DNA of 64,000 bases from Selaginella moellendorffii (taxonomy: Eukaryota; Plantae; Lycopodiophyta): assembly GCF_000143415.4 (NCBI RefSeq), contig NW_003314267.1, positions 2,269,730-2,333,729 on the forward strand, written 5' to 3'. The notes under the pieces are model-generated. The model did not search any database. It was not told where the DNA came from and was given only the letters and a program-made list of their open reading frames with translations. The position numbers and the translations under genes were made by a program. Numbering within the stretch: the stretch's first letter is position 1; each line of letters starts with the position of its first letter. Of this stretch, positions 20,731 to 28,716 are shown piece by piece.

Positions 20731-22221
20731 ATGGTCGTCGCCAGGGATCAGGCTATGGTAGTACAGCGCAGGACGATGGCAATGCCGTTAACTCGACTCG
20801 TTCTCGCCACTTTGTTCGCCGTTTGGGTGGTATGGAACTTCGTACCTCTGGAGCAGCTCCAATCCTTCACTGCTCCACCAGCGGCAGAGATCAGATTTAG
20901 CCACAGCGTAGAGCAGCACTACAAGTTCTCGGGCCACAACGATGGTGGTTCCTTGTCCGAGGAGATGGAACTGGGCTGGAAGAAGAAGGAGATCATCGAC
21001 AGCTTGAGGGGTGGAAGTGATACATCGTCACGGGTGGTTTCATCGGGTTCCCCCTGTTCCGGCCGAGCTATCTACATTTACAAGCTCCCGGAGAGATTCA
21101 ATCGGGCTATACTCGAGCAATGCGGGACATTTCTCCCGTGGTTCAGCATGTGTGACTACTTCACAAACTCGGGTATGGGAGTCCCAGTGCAGAGCTCCAG
21201 TTCTTCGGTCCTAGCACCAGCAGGGAAGTGGTTCCAGACCAACCAGTACGCTCTCGACGTTCTCTTCCACCAGAGGCTACTCCACTATCCATGCCTCACG
21301 GACTCTCCAGAGGAAGCGTCGCTCTTCTACGTTCCATACTACGCCGGCCTTGACGTTCTCAGGTACCACTACACCAACGAGACGCTGGAGCAGAAGAACG
21401 AGCTCGGGCTGGAAGTGATGGATCTCCTCAAGCGGCAGCAGTGGTGGTGGCGGAGGAATGGCAGGGACCATCTCTTGGTGATGGGAAAGATCACCTGGGA
21501 CTTTCGCAGGAACAACGAGACAATGTGGGGGAACACGCTGCTCAAGATGGCCGAGTTCGAGAACATGACCAAGCTTCTCCTGGAGCGAGATCCCTTCGAG
21601 CCAAACGAGATCGCAGTGCCACACCCGACTTACTTCCACCCGAGCTCCGACTCCGACATAAGCACCTGGATCTCACGCATCGCTTCCTCCAGCAGGGACA
21701 ATCTCGTCAGCTTCGCCGGGATGCCGAGGGACCCCGAGCACCTCCGGACTCACCTCATCAACCAGTGCAAGGATCGCCCAGATCGCTGCAAGCTGCTGGC
21801 CTGCTCGGGGAATCTGTGCGACAGTCCGGAACCGACCATGGAGCTGTTCTTGAGCTCCCAGTTTTGCATGCAGCCGCCGGGGGACAGTGCCACCCGACGC
21901 TCGGTCTTCGATTCTCTCATCGCCGGGTGTATCCCAGTGTTGTTCGACGCCGACACCGCTTACTTCCAGTATGCGTGGCACCTTCCCGAGGACTCGTCCT
22001 CGTACTCGGTGTTCGTGTCGGCCAGCGATGTCAAGAGGCGGAGAGTGGACGTGGTGGACGTGGTGGAGCACGTCTCTCCCAGGCAGAGGCTGCTCATGAG
22101 GAGGAAGATTATCGAGGAGATTGTTCCGGGGTTGCTCTACGCGCAGCCGGGGACGAGGCTGCTCAAGTACCGGGATGCGTTTGACACCACCATCGCCAGG
22201 TTGTTGCAAAAAGGTAAATAA
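20731..22221 (+). CDS. GT47 exostosin-family xyloglucan galactosyltransferase-like protein (MUR3/KATAMARI clade), intronless
   Basis: Type II TM anchor, IYIYKLPERFN, TNQYALDVLFHQR, FYVPYYAGLD, GKITWDFRR, FCMQPPGDSATRRSVFDSLIAGCIPV. Confidence 0.92.
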   Translation: MVVARDQAMVVQRRTMAMPLTRLVLATLFAVWVVWNFVPLEQLQSFTAPPAAEIRFSHSVEQHYKFSGHNDGGSLSEEMELGWKKKEIIDSLRGGSDTSSRVVSSGSPCSGRAIYIYKLPERFNRAILEQCGTFLPWFSMCDYFTNSGMGVPVQSSSSSVLAPAGKWFQTNQYALDVLFHQRLLHYPCLTDSPEEASLFYVPYYAGLDVLRYHYTNETLEQKNELGLEVMDLLKRQQWWWRRNGRDHLLVMGKITWDFRRNNETMWGNTLLKMAEFENMTKLLLERDPFEPNEIAVPHPTYFHPSSDSDISTWISRIASSSRDNLVSFAGMPRDPEHLRTHLINQCKDRPDRCKLLACSGNLCDSPEPTMELFLSSQFCMQPPGDSATRRSVFDSLIAGCIPVLFDADTAYFQYAWHLPEDSSSYSVFVSASDVKRRRVDVVDVVEHVSPRQRLLMRRKIIEEIVPGLLYAQPGTRLLKYRDAFDTTIARLLQKGK

Positions 22222-22652
22222 CTACATGCATGTAAATTGGATCGGTCATAAGAAATCTAGAGCTGGATTAGATTTAGAGTTGGATTTCCTCTAAATCTAT
22301 AACCACAATTTTTCTTTAAAAATCCAGATAAAGGGATATCCTATGATACCAGGATATTCTTGGTACAGCCATTACACCGGATAGAAATATCTCCTCGGCG
22401 CAGTTAAACTTTCTCTAATTCTTTTGTAATCAGTGTTTGACCTTGCTGCTTACCAACTAGCTAAACATCAAACAAGCCCTGTGCTCACAGAAAAAAGAGA
22501 GTTACTTATCTATCAGTCAATCCCTCCTGGGGACAAGATAAATTGACCAGCACAAAACAAATCCCTTATTCATTTTGGCAACTTGTAGATATTGGGGGAG
22601 TACACCTCTGTACCTGGGGTAGGTGGCCTAGTAAAAATTGCATTATATTGCA

Positions 22653-22676
22653 ATATATATATATATATATATATAT
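22653..22676. repeat. (AT)n microsatellite
   Basis: 12 AT units. Confidence 0.95.
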
Positions 22677-23485
22677 CAATTTCATACACATGTGTGTTTG
22701 AATTGTTTAAACATGCATATGATTCATCTTTTATATATAAATTTTTAATCTATGTCAATTCATTTGCCACATCACCATCTTCTTTTTTGTAATTTAAATT
22801 TGGCAAGAATGGCAAGAATGAGTCGTGAGATGATTTAAACCTGGCATCCTAGATGGAGCTTGATGTTCAATGGCTACATGCAATGGGGTCCAATCTAGAG
22901 TCTAGCCCATCTTTACCTCAGAATAAGCAAGAATCGTGCCATATGCATTGCAATATAGCACTCAAACTCCTCACCAAAAGTTTTGATCCAAGGGACTAGA
23001 ATGTCATAGCATTCATAAGCGATTGGTAGAGATTGTGGCTGGCAAGTTGGATGAGCTAGAGTGTGTGATTCTGCTGTTGGGCAACACGTTCTAAGCATTT
23101 CCACCCAATTGTATCTGGCAATCTTAGACATGTTTATTTGTTATGGACAATCCTAGTTGACATGGGTTGGATTCATATCTGGCATTCTGCCAAATTATAT
23201 TACACACAATCACGTTTCAATTGTTATGCATTATAATACTCTGTGCAATTGAAAAAAAAAAATACACATGTGTAAATAAAAAATGCACTCATGTGCAATT
23301 ATATATTGATTGCCATATGATTGGGCATCAATATTATAGCATTCATTTTAAAAATGAGTAGCCTTTAAATAATAAATTTTTTTCTTAAAAATAAGAATTT
23401 TTTTAAAGGTTAGCAAAAAATTTCAAAAACACTTTTTGTTATCAAAACGAGGGTTTTAAACGAATTATGTTCGAACTGAAGCTTC

Positions 23486-25498
23486 ATGGCGGAGGGGAAA
23501 CGGGTCAAGGTAGGCGAAGTTCTTGTGGGTTTGGGTTCCGAAGAATGGAGCGTGCCAAGCGGCACGACAGTGAAAGAGGTGATCCAGATGATTCTCTCGT
23601 CACGGGGTTGTAGCAGCTCCAAAATAGTCCTCGAGGCGCATGTCGATCAGGATGGGAGCGTCATCCCTCTCCCCGACACTTTGAAGCTAACGGAGATCGA
23701 GGGCTGGAGATACAAAGCCAGAGCGGAGGTGGTGTTCAAACCTCGTCGGTTTGCAACTGGCGTCGCGATACAAGACCCCACTGAGTGCTTCTTTATCGAG
23801 CCCGAAGGCGCTCAAGCTCTGGCCGAGGACCTCGTCGCTGGCCGCTACTGTGTTGTGTGTGACCGAAGGCAGAGCGGGAAGACCACCCTGCTCTACGCGG
23901 TTGCGAAGAGATTGGAACAGTCGGGCTTGGTTCCGGTTTACATCGGGGGCTTGAGCAGCGCGGCCAAGGACTGGACTTCTTCAGATATGTGGAGAGACTT
24001 GTGCAGGAGGTTGCACCTTGCGTGCCCGGCTTTGTTTGCGGAACAGAAACACGAAGGGATGTGTGACGATATCGTCTTCATGAGCATGTTCCGCAAAACA
24101 GTGCGAGTCAGTTGCAAGGTGGTGGTCATTCTAGATGAAGCAGATACCCTGCTCAAGCTCGACCCTGGCTGCCTAGACGTCTTCTTCCATACAATCAAAG
24201 ACATGAAGTCACAGAGGGCCTCCTACAACCTGTGGGCATTTGCTCTGGCTGGTGTCGAGACGATCAAAGACCTGCTCGAGGCACAGTATGACAGAAGAAG
24301 GCATGCAGCAAACGAAGGGTACCTTGAAAGCGCTGCACCGAGCAGATTGTCCCCTTTTCCGCATGACTTGTCACAAGCTTTGCGTCCGTTCACCGTGGAA
24401 GAATTGATCAGTCTCATGGAGCAGGCCAACGAGGAGCACGGAGGGAAGATTCTGCAGGTGGTGGAGGTGGCAACACACATCTGGCAACAGACTTCGGGGC
24501 ACAAAGGATTGGTCGGGACTTGCCTGGCGTATATGATGCAGGAGGAAGCTTTTACGTTCAAGTCTTGGCTGGAACTGTCGGACTCGTTCAAGCTCGGCCG
24601 CCACCTCTTCGGACAGGCAACGTATGCCCGAATCATGTCCTTCTTCAGGACGACGTCCACCATCTCTCAAGCGCTGTACGATCTTCTGGTCAGCTTCCTC
24701 GGACAGGAGAAGCGCGAGCTACAGAGCGTGGTGCACCTCCGTGATTTGCTGGCTGAAGGCGTATTGACTGCCGTATCATCGGGAGACGATAAGTACCAAG
24801 TTAGCATATCGTCTCCGTTGCTTCGTACGGCCATACTTCGACGGTGTTCTATCTGCGGCCAGCAGGTCGACGATCCTCCATCACCTCGCCATCTTGTGAA
24901 CCGAACTTGGCTCGTCCAGCAGGCAATCAGGACGCTCGACTACGACTGCATTTTCAGGTGAGCTTTGCGGCTTTCTTGTGTGCTCGTTCACCTTTTGATG
25001 TTTCCATGCAGGCCCGAGTGCTCCGAGTACTCCCATCAGTTCATTTTCATGTGCAGGGTCAAGGCAGTGCTGCAATCGGCCTACCCCTTTGTTGGTGCGG
25101 TTGTCCTCCCTGAGGTGAAGGAGGTTCCGGTCGAAGGTGTCCGACGCAGCCAGTCACGCCTCCATACCTTAGTCCGCGACCATCAGCACTTTCCAAGGTT
25201 CGGGTTTGAATATGTTGTCGATGCAGACGTGAAGAACTTGAGAGCTCGCTACCAGATGTCCGTAGACTACAGTAAGCAGCACTCTGCACAGGTCTACTTG
25301 ATCAACTTTACTCTGCGCAAGGATCCTTTGGAGATTAAACCAGATGACGAGTCGATATATTTCTGGGGGGTGCGGTTTGATCCCGAGGACCAGACTGCAA
25401 CCGTGACTAGTTTGGATGCGAGAGGTGCACGGGAGGCAGCTGTTTTGAGTTTACGCAATTGGACTGGCAAGCTCAAGTTTGATGACTTGGTGGGATGA
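23486..25498 (+). CDS. Crinkler(CR)-like protein: Ubl-like N-terminus + AAA+ (AAA_35-like) P-loop NTPase + PD-(D/E)xK-like C-terminal domain; 2 exons, ~652 aa
   Basis: Exons 23486-24957 and 25012-25498 join in frame across a 54-bp GT-AG intron. Motifs: RRQSGKTT Walker A, VVVILDEAD Walker B, SPF, PFTVEE, TSGHKGLV. C-terminus reads EYSHQFIF..VLPEV..RLHTLV..FGFEYVV..VYLINFT. Confidence 0.7.
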
Positions 25499-25769
25499 AA
25501 TACTAAGTGCTTAAAGAATGGCATCCTAAAATCTTCATGATTAAACATTATATACATTATTGTAAAATAATGTTATCAAAGGGTTCAGTCCTTTTGCATG
25601 GCAATAAATTTCAGCGCTTTTGGATGAAAAGCCTGATTGAGAGGAGGCACACATAAGCAAATCCAACAGCAAAGTCGGGAACAGAAGAGAGTACGCTACA
25701 ATCATCAAGCTGCTCGGGGCAATCGTTAAGGAAAAACAAATTTATCACAATTTTAACATAGTTTGTAAC

Positions 25770-28716
25770 TTAGCTTCTTGATACTGGAGCTTCCATAAAT
25801 CTCCTGCGGCTTCTTGCTGGAGCTGCTGATCTCGACGACAATGGCTGGGACGAACAAACACTGTTTCGCTGTTGTGGAGTTGCCGGAGTCATCTTCACGG
25901 GCTCTACTCTATTGCTGACGGTAGTGCTGCTCGAGATCACGGAACTTTGCTCCACAGCTGCTAGAACAGGTGTAGATAGCACTGGCTGATAGTCTCCACC
26001 AAATGGATTAGTTCCACCACGTCCCAAGTTGCTCATTGTTCCATGGCTTTCACCGCCAGATCTTCCCAACGCCTTCGCTGCTGTGCTTGCCTTGGTGGTG
26101 GTGGTGGTGACAGGAGCTCGGGCCTCGTTTTGCCGCTGCTTCCACACGTTCACTGCGTCGTTGATCTTCTTCTTTCCCAGGTTTTTCCCAGCAGCCAGAC
26201 GCATGTCTTTCTCTCGTTCTTTTGCCTTCTTCATGGCAGCCTGTGCTGCAAGAGCAGCAGCAGCCACGGACTCCGCTAGACTCGGCTGCTTCTTTTCGTC
26301 ACCAGCGTCTTCTTTGTCCTCGTCTTTCAAAGTACTAGCGTTTTCTGGAGCAGTAGCAGTATCAGCACCAGCAGCAGTAGCTTGAGTGCTTTCGTTGGCG
26401 TTTTCGTCGACATACGGCTGGTACTCCTGGGTTTCATGGTCGTAACTGTACCACGCACCATCCTTTCCACTGTAGTAGAGCCCTGTGTTGATTCATTTTG
26501 TAAGTTCTAAGAAAATTCAAAAACACGTGAAGGCAATCACGAACCTCGAGTTGCATCGTAGTACATCCCTGATGCTGCATCGTGATAGTAACCTGACGCC
26601 TCGTCCCAAACGAAACCGGTCTCTGGTGTTGCAGCACTATCGCCAATCTGATCATCTTGCTGTTGCGGGTTATACTCTTTCGGAGCCCAAGCGTACTGTC
26701 ATTTATATCCGCGTGAGAACACATCTACGTAAAACATAACAATTGCTTACTTGTTGAGGGAATGCTGCGGCCTCAATTGCAGAGGCAGCTATGCCACTTG
26801 CCAGAGCAGAGTATCCATTTAAGCTTTTGGCATATGATACTCTTAGAATCTGGCTGTTTCTCTCCAAAACACATCCGTTTGTAGCGTTCATGGCCCTTGT
26901 AGAATCATCAATCTGAACACAGCATCCAGCTTATAAACAACACATAAACTTCAACATGAAAGAAATACTCACCGAGTGAAATGAAACAAAAGCGTATCCC
27001 CGAGAGAGCTGAGTATGCCTATCCCTGACTATCCGAACTTCCTGCTCGAAATAACAAGTAAATTTCTGCACTAACAAAAATGTAAATTCGATCATACTTT
27101 CAGTGACGCGTGCTTGGAAAACTCGTTGCTGAGTATTTCCTCGTCGATGCTATTGTCTAAGCCCCGGACAAGCAAGACTTGGCTCGGACCTGGAAAACTC
27201 CACGTTAGTTTATGCTACAGAGAGAAACCCAGAAACTAACCAGGATCTGAAAACTTCCTTCCGGCGCTGATCGGAACCTCCGCCAGTGGTGCATCCTCCG
27301 CACGCTTTTCGTTGCACTGTTAACACATCCGAAAACAACGGGGTAAAGAATCAGAAACGTATCATCTTACCTGAAAGCATAATACACGGCGTGCAAAATT
27401 TGCACATCCACACAAAGTACATATCCAGTCATTAACTTCTCGGCCCGGTTGTCTTGCGCCAGGAAGTCCCCCAGGTCCAGCAGTTGGCTTGCTACTGTCA
27501 CGATTTGCGGTGAAAAAGCTGCCATAAACATCCATGTGCAAAGTCATACCTGTATTCAAAGCAGAGCTTGCGGCCATCCAAAACCATGCCTTCATCCCAA
27601 GCCTCAGCCATCATCGTCTGTGCAGCTTCCTGCAATAACCTTACTCGCTCTCAGCATCGGAGATGAACATTTCTAATAGTTCCAAACAAAGTTCTTACCA
27701 CGGACGGAAAATCTACGAAGGCAAAACCACGAGAAACGCCAGAAATTCGCTCTTTGATCACTCGAACGTGCTTCAAGGGGCCCCAGATGGCCTACATTCA
27801 ACAGAATAAGCATACAAAGAAATTAAGAAACTTAAAAGTCGTCATTCTTACGAAGGCCTCGTAAAGATCGTGCTCCCCGGTTTTTTGTGAAAGTCCCTTG
27901 ACAACAATCGTAGCTGAAGGAGCCTGGCAACATTTACAAACAAGTTAAAAACAGGAAATCATGTCGAGTTCACTCACAACTGCAGGAAAATCGTATCGGC
28001 CTCTGTCGTTGAGCTGTTTCTTTGAATCGTACTGCAAGTTTCCGTGTTCCTCGTACGCTGTATCTCGTCCGTAGCCGTTCCAGGAAGAACTTGAGTTGCT
28101 CTTGTCGTCATAGCCAGAAAAAACCACGCGATCACGTCCTCGATCACGAGCTGGGCTTCGGTCCCTGTTCCTGCTTCGGCTCCTACTCCTACTCCTGCTT
28201 CTACTTCTCTCTCGGTCTCGATGCCAGTCTCTACCTCGACGATACCTCTCGCGCTCAAACTGACCGCCACCCCTTGGATGCTCTTCAGTTCCATGCGTCG
28301 AGTACTTGTCCTCGTAAGACGACCACTTCGAAGAGCCTCGTCTTCCATAGTCTTGGGCAGAGGCCCAAGAGCCCCCATACTCGTTTTGGTGGTAGAATGC
28401 CGCTCCTTCATAGCCGACATCATCATCCGCAGTATAACTCAATCTACGAACAAAACAAAGAGAAACACTTAAGAAACTGGAAGAAAAAAGAGGTAGAGAG
28501 CTCTCGATCGACTTACCGGTCACTTTGCTCGTAGCGAAGCCCATAGCCCTCCACAGCCTGTATAACGAAGAAGATTGAGTCAGGATCGCATTCGTTATGG
28601 AACTAGAGCATAAAGTCATGATTTTTAGTGTCGCGAGGCGGCGGCTGCCGGGCTATCACTGAGAGAAGAAGAATTTAACGGTGTCATACGCTGCTAGAGT
28701 AACGCCCAGTGTCCAT
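25770..28716 (-). CDS. SUA: SUPPRESSOR OF ABI3-5 / RBM5-RBM10-like splicing factor (RRM, RanBP2 ZnF, RRM, OCRE); no G-patch visible
   Basis: MDTGRYSSS|AVEGYG start, RS-rich tract, APSATIVVKGLSQKT, SRGFAF, DWICTLCGCANFARRVLCFQC, GFVWDEASGYYHDAASGMYYD (OCRE). Confidence 0.85.

Follow-up and report, generated by a model that had tools for sequence, protein, structure and literature searches.

A Crinkler-type ATPase with a nuclease-fold domain in Selaginella moellendorffii: architecture, relatives and putative active site

We analysed a 64,000-nt stretch of Selaginella moellendorffii DNA (contig NW_003314267.1, positions 2,269,730 to 2,333,729; hereafter the window, whose numbering is used throughout) and describe a two-exon gene on its plus strand at 23486-25498. 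That the product has the identity and architecture of a Crinkler-RHS-type (CR) protein is, in our judgment, close to certain. It is modelled as an intracellular protein of four parts: a ubiquitin-like head, an AAA+ nucleoside triphosphatase (NTPase), a lid with a winged helix, and a domain of the PD-(D/E)xK, or restriction-endonuclease (REase), fold. A role as a nuclease-impaired regulator within a conflict or defence family is somewhat favoured. Taking the statement as a whole, we consider it likely that the gene specifies a nuclease-impaired CR-type protein that keeps a binding or regulatory role in an old conflict or defence family of lycophytes and ferns. We regard the gene as a well-documented new plant representative of an already published class of proteins, not as an undescribed system.

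Crinklers are chiefly familiar as effectors through which oomycete pathogens of crops cause cell death, and why non-pathogenic eukaryotes keep them is a question reportedly taken up again in 2026 by a study of Crinkler-like genes of fish in Nature Communications. The CR class is said to go back to Zhang, Burroughs, Vidal, Iyer and Aravind (Nucleic Acids Res, 2016). In the review PMC5289972, which summarises that study, CR proteins are defined as a head joined to toxin domains, the combination of NTPase, helix-turn-helix (HTH) and REase is the commonest C-terminus of published Crinklers (CRNs), CR proteins are reported from land plants, and the NTPase+REase modules are proposed to stem from transposon ATPase/endonuclease pairs. 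As the architecture and the land-plant proteins were thus published in 2016, an earlier note on this DNA, made from the sequence, went too far in proposing an undescribed system. A second source lists chlorophytes, land plants, amoebozoans and animals as carriers (PMC12957317). Our literature search for Selaginella with Crinkler returned no paper treating these genes. Since the architecture was already published, the value of the present locus is that of an example and a family map. It is a clean plant case (expressed, spliced, constrained and syntenic on both haplotypes) from a family shared with ferns, with a predicted, distinct ubiquitin-like head and with catalytic residues that vary between paralogues and even haplotypes. 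Selaginella is accordingly tractable for asking whether plant CR proteins are nucleases, and whether they serve defence or self/non-self conflict or are remnants of selfish elements. The interest would be greater if the plant family proved to be a working defence or conflict system.

Gene model and domain architecture

Two open reading frames (ORFs) of the plus strand, 23486..24961 and 24965..25498, adjoin in the window, and their spliced product is 652 amino acids (aa) long. The ATG at 23486 is the first possible start because an in-frame stop lies at 23477. In three stranded RNA-seq runs labelled Selaginella moellendorffii, reads in the gene region were confined to about 23470-25480 and came from the strand opposite to that of reads on the minus-strand neighbour gene. 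Reads of two runs (X10, X12) and a 1955-nt transcript contig (X1) skipped 54 nt. The aligner put the joint at 24952/25007, with ends TT..CA, which is the same event as the GT..AG junction 24957/25012. At 24954 the reads have the G of the other allele (F490 in the window, C490 in that allele), which makes the final 5 exon letters equal to the final 5 intron letters and the two placements equal in score. The intron splits a codon as AG/G, and the frame is preserved. From these data we conclude that the gene model is confirmed. The ORFs, splice sites and RNA reads bear out the intact two-exon ORF of about 652 aa described in the earlier note, and every motif quoted there was found in the window translation (WSVPSGTTVKEVIQMI, RRQSGKTT, ILDEAD, LAGV, SPF, PFTVEE, TSGHKGL, PEV, RLHTLV and INF). 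The AT-rich flanks it described exist upstream (GC 0.32-0.35 at 22500-23499, against 0.52-0.57 inside the gene) but are weaker just downstream (GC 0.43). No obvious hydrophobic, signal-peptide-like stretch was seen by eye at the N-terminus.

The intron also carries an in-frame TGA at 24959-24961, so that its retention would yield a 491-aa protein with the head, ATPase and winged helix but without the REase domain.

A whole-protein AlphaFold2 model was obtained for the database allele (P0001, 97% identical) with a 30-sequence alignment (predicted local distance difference test, pLDDT, 85.6; predicted template-modelling score, pTM, 0.79). Foldseek matched it to SSO1545 (2fna, E 1.9e-9), PABY2304 (2qen), ORC/Cdc6, NLRC4, the wheat nucleotide-binding leucine-rich-repeat (NLR) protein Sr35 and TnsC. 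Because these matches were dominated by the ATPase and uninformative on the head and the tail, the tail was modelled alone, from the window's own exon 2 (25013-25495) with a 27-sequence alignment (pLDDT 88.7, pTM 0.83).

The exon 2 model has the order αβββαβ (aa 496-591) followed by three more strands. High-probability Foldseek matches were Bax1, SfsA, BstEII, McrC, Cas4 SSO0001, Hjc, HsdR and the R2 endonuclease (E 1e-3 to 2e-2). A VIA-wide scan, which is independent of Foldseek, returned VC1899 (Z 8.4; 112 residues, 3.1 Å), Can2 (8.2), PaqCI (7.7), McrC (7.4) and NucC (7.2), then Cdn1, NgoMIV, SfsA and others, and nearly every row was a PD-(D/E)xK nuclease. The ESM-Atlas, searched by structure, gave a template-modelling (TM) score of 0.73 to a Mucoromycota cluster with AAA_35 in 67% and Crinkler in 38% of its members. 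As nearly every structural match is a PD-(D/E)xK nuclease, we regard the assignment of the modelled C-terminal domain to this fold as secure; the PD-(D/E)xK-like spacing noticed earlier in the C-terminus agrees with matches made almost exclusively to such nucleases by Foldseek, the VIA-wide scan and the Atlas. The domain belongs to no sequence family in Pfam, NCBIfam or PADLOC (27 aligned domains gave scattered chance matches only), and a profile of the REase alignment found nothing significant among Protein Data Bank (PDB) sequences.

Among Pfam models only AAA_22 passed on the window's two exons, and members of the family matched AAA_22, AAA_35, AAA_16, ATPase_2, nSTAND3 and TniB. Neither NB-ARC (PF00931) nor leucine-rich repeats matched at E<=1, and wheat Sr35 was only a distant structural match. 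At ~400 columns, the Foldseek alignments with ORC/Cdc6 and SSO1545 have room for a lid and a winged helix, and T336, G338, H339 and G341 of the TSGHKGL motif are nearly invariant in the family. On structural modelling, the NTPase is placed in the ORC/Cdc6-STAND/AAA_35 branch of AAA+ proteins, and the model has a winged helix between NTPase and REase domain. The AAA_22 match, the AAA+ structural neighbours and the lack of NB-ARC agree with the previous view of an AAA_35/STAND-related ATPase rather than a plant NB-ARC.

In the P0001 model the head consists of strands (E) and a helix (H) in the order E11-16, E19-24, H29-40, E46-53, E59-61 and E74-81, with pLDDT of about 75-92. This order, ββαββ..β, is that of a ubiquitin-like beta-grasp, and the head (aa 11-81) is predicted to be of this type. 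V14, W21, G26, E31, E50, L68 and Y76 are conserved among plant paralogues. The Pfam Crinkler model (PF20147) did not match the head of the window protein or of its plant paralogues, even at E<=10. Plant and fungal Crinkler heads lacked profile similarity in hhalign (E 0.34, 13 columns), the head alignment profile retrieved nothing significant from PDB sequences, and a language-model search with aa 1-95 alone gave no usable match. Of the proposal of a beta-grasp-like N-terminus, the ubiquitin-like order of elements therefore stands in the model, but sequence similarity to the Crinkler head was not found.

Relatives and origin of the family

An exhaustive phmmer search with P0001 against 1.84 billion representatives gave 477 matches at E<=1e-3, 15 of them at E<=1e-30; names were obtained for 30 of the 477. 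The Selaginella paralogues are 447043, 418911, 427665, 402142, 410363/411476, 427301, LOC112343062, 428541, 428986/445613 and 417218, the last with three 90%-cluster mates, which makes at least 11 dispersed Selaginella loci besides this gene. Homologues were found in ferns (Adiantum nelumboides and A. capillus-veneris), in Mucoromycota (Paraglomus, Rhizophagus, Dentiscutata, Modicella, Mortierella, Haplosporangium and Jimgerdemannia; 24-31% identity to the fungal proteins), in the green alga Enallax and in the amoebozoan Soliformovum. Remoter matches were large cyanobacterial 'AAA-like domain' proteins, aligned over the ATPase part only. There was no seed-plant protein among the 30 matches named.

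The link to Crinklers is supplied by the fungal relatives. Three of them carry a PF20147 head: P0065 (4.7e-13), P0043 (4.3e-17) and P0036 (8.5e-9), found from P0001 by phmmer at E 1.1e-8, 2.8e-12 and 1.3e-13, respectively. They fall in the fungal clade beside the plant clade, and two further fungal homologues have a sub-threshold Crinkler head. Crinkler is present in each of the three named clusters that rank nearest by language-model features (0.99, 0.97 and 0.96), and in the nearest Atlas clusters Crinkler occurs in 38-54% of members. The CR architecture suggested in the earlier note is thus borne out: NTPase, HTH and REase domain occur together here, and Mucoromycota homologues carry PF20147 heads on the same module.

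A quick maximum-likelihood tree of 52 proteins (LG+C20, unrooted) contained a plant clade of 12 rows (Shimodaira-Hasegawa-like approximate likelihood-ratio test, SH-aLRT, 98), in which Selaginella and Adiantum are interleaved in three subclades, and a Mucoromycota clade of 20 rows (support 100). The Selaginella LOC112343062/428541 and 428986/417218 lineages lie in an unresolved group with the alga, and the amoebozoan pair lies outside. The tree suggests that the family predates the lycophyte-fern split and has duplicated since.

The exon 1 search identified SELMODRAFT_409157 of Selaginella moellendorffii (P0001, 652 aa) at 97% protein identity. Scaffold GL377575.1 (locus L001) is collinear with window positions 13429-35437 (~22 kb) at 94-98% nucleotide identity, about 97% for the locus, and since the collinearity includes intergenic DNA, the window is another haplotype, or another accession, of the SELMODRAFT_409157 locus. 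Over the 2013-nt gene the alleles differ by 44 substitutions and 0 indels. The ratio of nonsynonymous to synonymous divergence (dN/dS; Nei-Gojobori, per exon then summed) is 0.28 for the whole gene, 0.23 for the ATPase and winged helix, 0.32 for the C-terminal part and 0.60 for the head, the last from only three changes. The protein is under purifying selection.

This family distribution bears on the idea that the gene is a housekeeping AAA+ ATPase, an ORC/Cdc6-like replication factor with an unrelated C-terminal extension. ORC and Cdc6 are among the best solved Foldseek matches, and UniProt names one paralogue 'ORC1/DEAH AAA+ ATPase domain-containing protein'. However, the sources looked up were Selaginella, Adiantum, Mucoromycota, a green alga and an amoebozoan, none of them a seed plant; TIGR02928, the Orc1/Cdc6 model, has a cutoff of 181 bits and scored 12; and ATPase and REase domain are conserved jointly throughout the family. 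We rejected the housekeeping reading on taxonomic distribution and domain content, and give it practically no weight. Orthology to a conserved plant housekeeping ATPase, which would have contradicted the CR assignment, is likewise at odds with the patchy set of named homologues and the unmatched Orc1/Cdc6 model.

Recent horizontal acquisition from a plant-associated Mucoromycota fungus, or contamination by one, would fit the closest relatives outside plants, which belong to the plant-associated Glomeromycotina, Mortierellomycotina and Endogonales. Yet the gene sits between plant genes on megabase scaffolds in both haplotypes, has host-like GC and a validated short spliceosomal intron, and shares only 24-31% identity with the fungal proteins, and the plant sequences, in which Selaginella and fern are interleaved, group in a clade by themselves rather than nesting in the fungal one. 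This explanation is highly improbable. For an ancient transfer, in either direction, the unrooted tree gives no direction.

A selfish or mobile-element-derived gene still propagating in a transposon, like the fish Crinkler-like AACRNL genes, has that precedent, the TniB matches of family members, the TnsC structural matches, the many dispersed Selaginella copies and the differing intron positions among paralogues in its favour, as well as the transposon origin proposed for CR NTPase+REase modules in PMC5289972. Against these stand the absence of terminal inverted or long direct repeats flanking the gene (a search for terminal inverted and long terminal repeats around it turned up no more than a (TA)n tract and some short pairs attributable to chance), its same syntenic place among ordinary genes on both haplotypes and a dN/dS of 0.28. 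The paralogues are so divergent (less than 50% identity) that the duplications must be old. Three paralogue loci compared, on other scaffolds among PPR, selenium-binding, PRONE, GULLO and dehydrogenase genes, had ordinary neighbours, no transposase and no conserved partner gene, and tblastn found no second copy of the gene in the window. We hold continuing propagation to be very unlikely. A domesticated mobile element had been one option of the earlier note; the repeats, the neighbours and the paralogue loci carry no mobile-element signature around the gene.

Intron positions differ among the paralogues. The intron of this gene follows codon 490, that of SELMODRAFT_410363 is found at about codon 550, SELMODRAFT_447043 is longer by 153 nt around codons 43-74, and LOC112343062 is intronless (paralogue spans compared: L004 8001-10035, L003 8001-10454 and L005 8001-9779). 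An intronless ancestor that later gained introns would fit this pattern, and so would annotation patches placed over frameshifts. SELMODRAFT_427665 (P0005) is annotated as a 988-aa protein in which a DEAD-box helicase (DEAD 2.4e-33) precedes the CR-like module, probably through a fusion of gene models. NCBI calls the homologues of Mortierella and Haplosporangium (P0065, P0023) 'ATP-dependent RNA helicase', but they have no Pfam helicase domain; these names look like annotation carry-over. The closest full-length relative from outside Selaginella, P0002 (Logan run SRR6920682, locus L002; 671 aa, 41% identical), comes from an intronless, transcript-like contig of 2342 nt, keeps the Asp at the position of His542 and, in the tree, falls with Adiantum. 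Its head has a weak, below-threshold match to the plant PADRE domain (E 0.009).

Putative active site and proposed function

About 68 positions are shared by 75% or more of 41 family members, and at ten of them the window protein deviates. Four deviations are conservative (F168M, L214V, R238K and L311M), and five affect motif residues or putative active-site residues (G126D, D542H, L558Y, H570R and R573M). G126D, at the initial Gly of Walker A (G in 91% of family members), is shared by the two alleles and has no counterpart elsewhere in the plant clade. At position 542, His occurs only in the two alleles of this gene; paralogue P0003 has N and P0009 has E. Residues kept include the Walker A Lys and Thr, the Walker B Asp-Glu, TSGHKGL, E496, E525, E557 and Y577. 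An active PD-(D/E)xK enzyme combines a beta2 acid with a beta3 (D/E)xK, and here residue 542 is His and E557 has no Lys at +2. In the alignment the whole family is a Lys-less variant of the (D/E)xK motif. That the expected Asp is His in RLHTLV, as first seen in the earlier note, holds in the 27-sequence C-terminal alignment, where most other members have Asp. Because the beta2 Asp is lost, the P-loop is altered and the REase helix has haplotype-specific changes, this copy is probably nuclease-impaired.

The alternative that the protein is a fully active NTP-dependent nuclease and a functional effector, with His542 as a metal ligand or another residue compensating, draws on the retention of E496, E525, E557 and Y577, on purifying selection that includes the C-terminal part (dN/dS 0.32) and on family chemistry that is atypical anyway, Lys at +2 being missing throughout. 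It is opposed by the residue at position 542, which is Asp in 88% of family members and His in this gene alone, by two further changes of the window haplotype at conserved helix positions, and by the replaced Walker A Gly. We regard full activity as unlikely.

At the listed single-nucleotide polymorphisms in the gene (23513-25445), ~95% of informative RNA base calls had the other haplotype's letter, including those at 25248 and 25257 (residues 570 and 573). On the minus-strand neighbour (25872-26073) the two alleles were read at about 35-40% and 60-65%. With these small read numbers, the skew could reflect expression biased against the window allele, the one with H570R and K573M, or a different genotype of the sequenced plants.

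For a nuclease-impaired CR-type protein, function may be outlined by analogy. The ATPase would serve as a nucleotide-dependent switch or oligomeriser, as proposed for CR proteins with NTPase, HTH and REase, and the winged helix would place the protein on nucleic acid. The REase domain may cut DNA in family members with the E/D/E acidic set. In this copy cleavage would be reduced or lost and binding retained, and the protein could act as a sensor, a regulator or a partner of active paralogues.

Several observations weigh against the interpretation as a nuclease-impaired CR-type regulator in a conflict or defence family. The three RNA runs show low expression, with a depth of 1-5 on the gene versus 50-70 on the neighbouring gene. 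Sequence similarity between the plant head and the Crinkler head was not detected, and the beta-grasp assignment of the plant head is read from the order of secondary structure in the model. The fold matches of the tail are individually moderate (Z 7-8, Foldseek E about 1e-3) and persuade through their consistency. With the canonical Lys missing family-wide, the catalytic residues are assigned by position, and His542 could still bind metal. The dN/dS of 0.28 speaks for constraint without indicating which activity is constrained. Finally, known bacterial defence families were not matched: PADLOC returned no significant match (best E 0.005, one unrelated family), and NCBIfam anti-phage models scored 14-16 bits against cutoffs of 370-790.

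Compared with published CR proteins, the window gene has the same order of parts (head, P-loop NTPase, HTH and REase-fold domain), and the patchy spread of its family over fungi, a green alga, an amoebozoan and land plants matches the reported one. It differs in that its head lacks an LxLFLAK-type motif, a Pfam Crinkler match and profile likeness to fungal heads, and in having His for Asp in beta2 and Asp for Gly in Walker A. Unlike CR effectors, the protein is encoded by a non-pathogenic plant and is presumably not delivered into a host.

Bacterial proteins that join AAA_35 or AAA-ATPase_like (PF14516, PF09820) to a PD-(D/E)xK domain (DUF8371, PF28130; PDDEXK_3, PF13366) share the two-part module of ~500-530 aa. 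The window REase model matches AAA_35 + DUF8371/PDDEXK_3 clusters with TM 0.52-0.58, and these are next-best by language-model features (0.95). However, the bacterial proteins have no N-terminal head, and are of uncharacterised function, and the window's C-terminal domain has no sequence-level Pfam match. The archaeal ATPases SSO1545 and PABY2304 and ORC/Cdc6 are the best solved matches to the ATPase, lid and winged helix (E 1.9e-9 to 1e-6), but are only 13-16% identical and have neither nuclease domain nor head, and the Orc1/Cdc6 family models went unmatched. Can2/Card1/VC1899, NucC, McrC and the Avs3 nuclease share the PD-(D/E)xK core with extra strands (Z 8.4-5.2), and in their systems a nucleotide-binding or ATPase module regulates an REase-fold effector. 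Their identity is, however, 5-12%, their sensors differ (CARF/SAVED, McrB, STAND with TPR) and the canonical Lys is absent from the window protein. In Tn7-like elements an AAA+ ATPase (TnsC/TniB) is paired with an REase-fold nuclease (TnsA), as here, and TnsC appeared in Foldseek and TniB weakly in Pfam; CR modules have been proposed to descend from this pair. Those are separate proteins in a transposon, whereas the window gene lacks a transposase, repeat ends and signs of mobility.

A more ambitious reading would be that lycophytes and ferns keep an old Crinkler-type ATPase-nuclease family, lost from seed plants, as a system of innate defence or genome conflict that does not depend on NLRs. 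As in bacterial ATPase-nuclease defences, an REase-fold effector would be licensed by a switch of the ORC/STAND type, and the window gene would serve as a sensor, regulator or decoy that is nuclease-dead, varies between alleles and works with catalytically intact paralogues. We consider this proposal speculative and quite unlikely to hold in full.

Feature coordinates, neighbouring genes and minor observations

The features of the gene and its neighbours are collected in Table 1.

Table 1. Features of the CR-type gene and adjacent genes (window coordinates)
Feature	Coordinates	Strand	Evidence or remarks
5' untranslated region, minimal	23469..23485	+	Contig of run X1 begins 23469; RNA depth begins in 23370-23483 bin
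Exon 1	23486..24957	+	Codons 1-490 and first 2 bases of codon 491; ORF, GT donor 24958, RNA coverage
Intron, 54 nt, GT..AG	24958..25011	+	GT 24958-24959, AG 25010-25011; spliced reads X10, X12; spliced contig X1
Exon 2	25012..25498	+	Last base of codon 491 and codons 492-652, stop TGA 25496-25498; encodes REase-fold domain
N-terminal ubiquitin-like (beta-grasp-type) head, aa 8-85, predicted	23507..23740	+	AlphaFold2 model of P0001
Linker strand RRFA..G....P leading into NTPase	23744..23785	+	P86, R87, F89, P98 kept in 75-100% of family
AAA+ P-loop NTPase core, aa 100-266	23783..24283	+	Pfam AAA_22 E 1e-6 at aa 123-263; Foldseek
Walker A DRRQSGKTT	23861..23887	+	Lys, Thr kept; first Gly of consensus is Asp
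Walker B VVVILDEA	24119..24142	+	D217 in 100%, E218 in 92% of family; both kept
Helical lid, aa 300-406	24383..24703	+	Helices 304-406 in model; holds TSGHKGL (24491-24511)
Winged helix-turn-helix, aa 407-457	24704..24856	+	Model E410-412, H416-424, E427-432, E436-441, H444-453
E496, helix alpha1, SEYxxQ motif	25025..25027	+	E in 91% of family
H542, strand beta2	25163..25165	+	D in 88% of family
E557, strand beta3, GFE motif	25208..25210	+	Val at +2 in window; no Lys at +2 in any family member
R570, M573, helix alpha2	25247..25258	+	Window-haplotype-specific; family H (82%), R (76%); P0001 H and K
GT47 exostosin-family glycosyltransferase	20731-22221		Intact 496-aa single-exon ORF; Pfam E 1.3e-73; syntenic on both haplotypes
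Downstream neighbour gene	25730-26200 and beyond	-	718-aa product in allelic locus, low-complexity Ala/Ser/Thr-rich; depth 50-70

The neighbours are ordinary plant genes, with the GT47 exostosin upstream and ORC4, XPG/FEN, peroxidase, amine oxidase and KDEL receptor genes in the allelic locus, and the setting among plant housekeeping genes described in the earlier note is confirmed in the window and in that locus. The product of the downstream minus-strand neighbour, taken from the allelic locus, had no Pfam domain. A (TA)n-rich palindromic tract lies at 22635-22690, ~800 nt 5' of the start codon, and the only break of collinearity near the gene is at this tract, which measures 62 nt in the window versus 23 nt in L001. 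In the downstream neighbour, RNA reads revealed in-frame length polymorphisms of 3 nt (26093) and 6 nt (25875).

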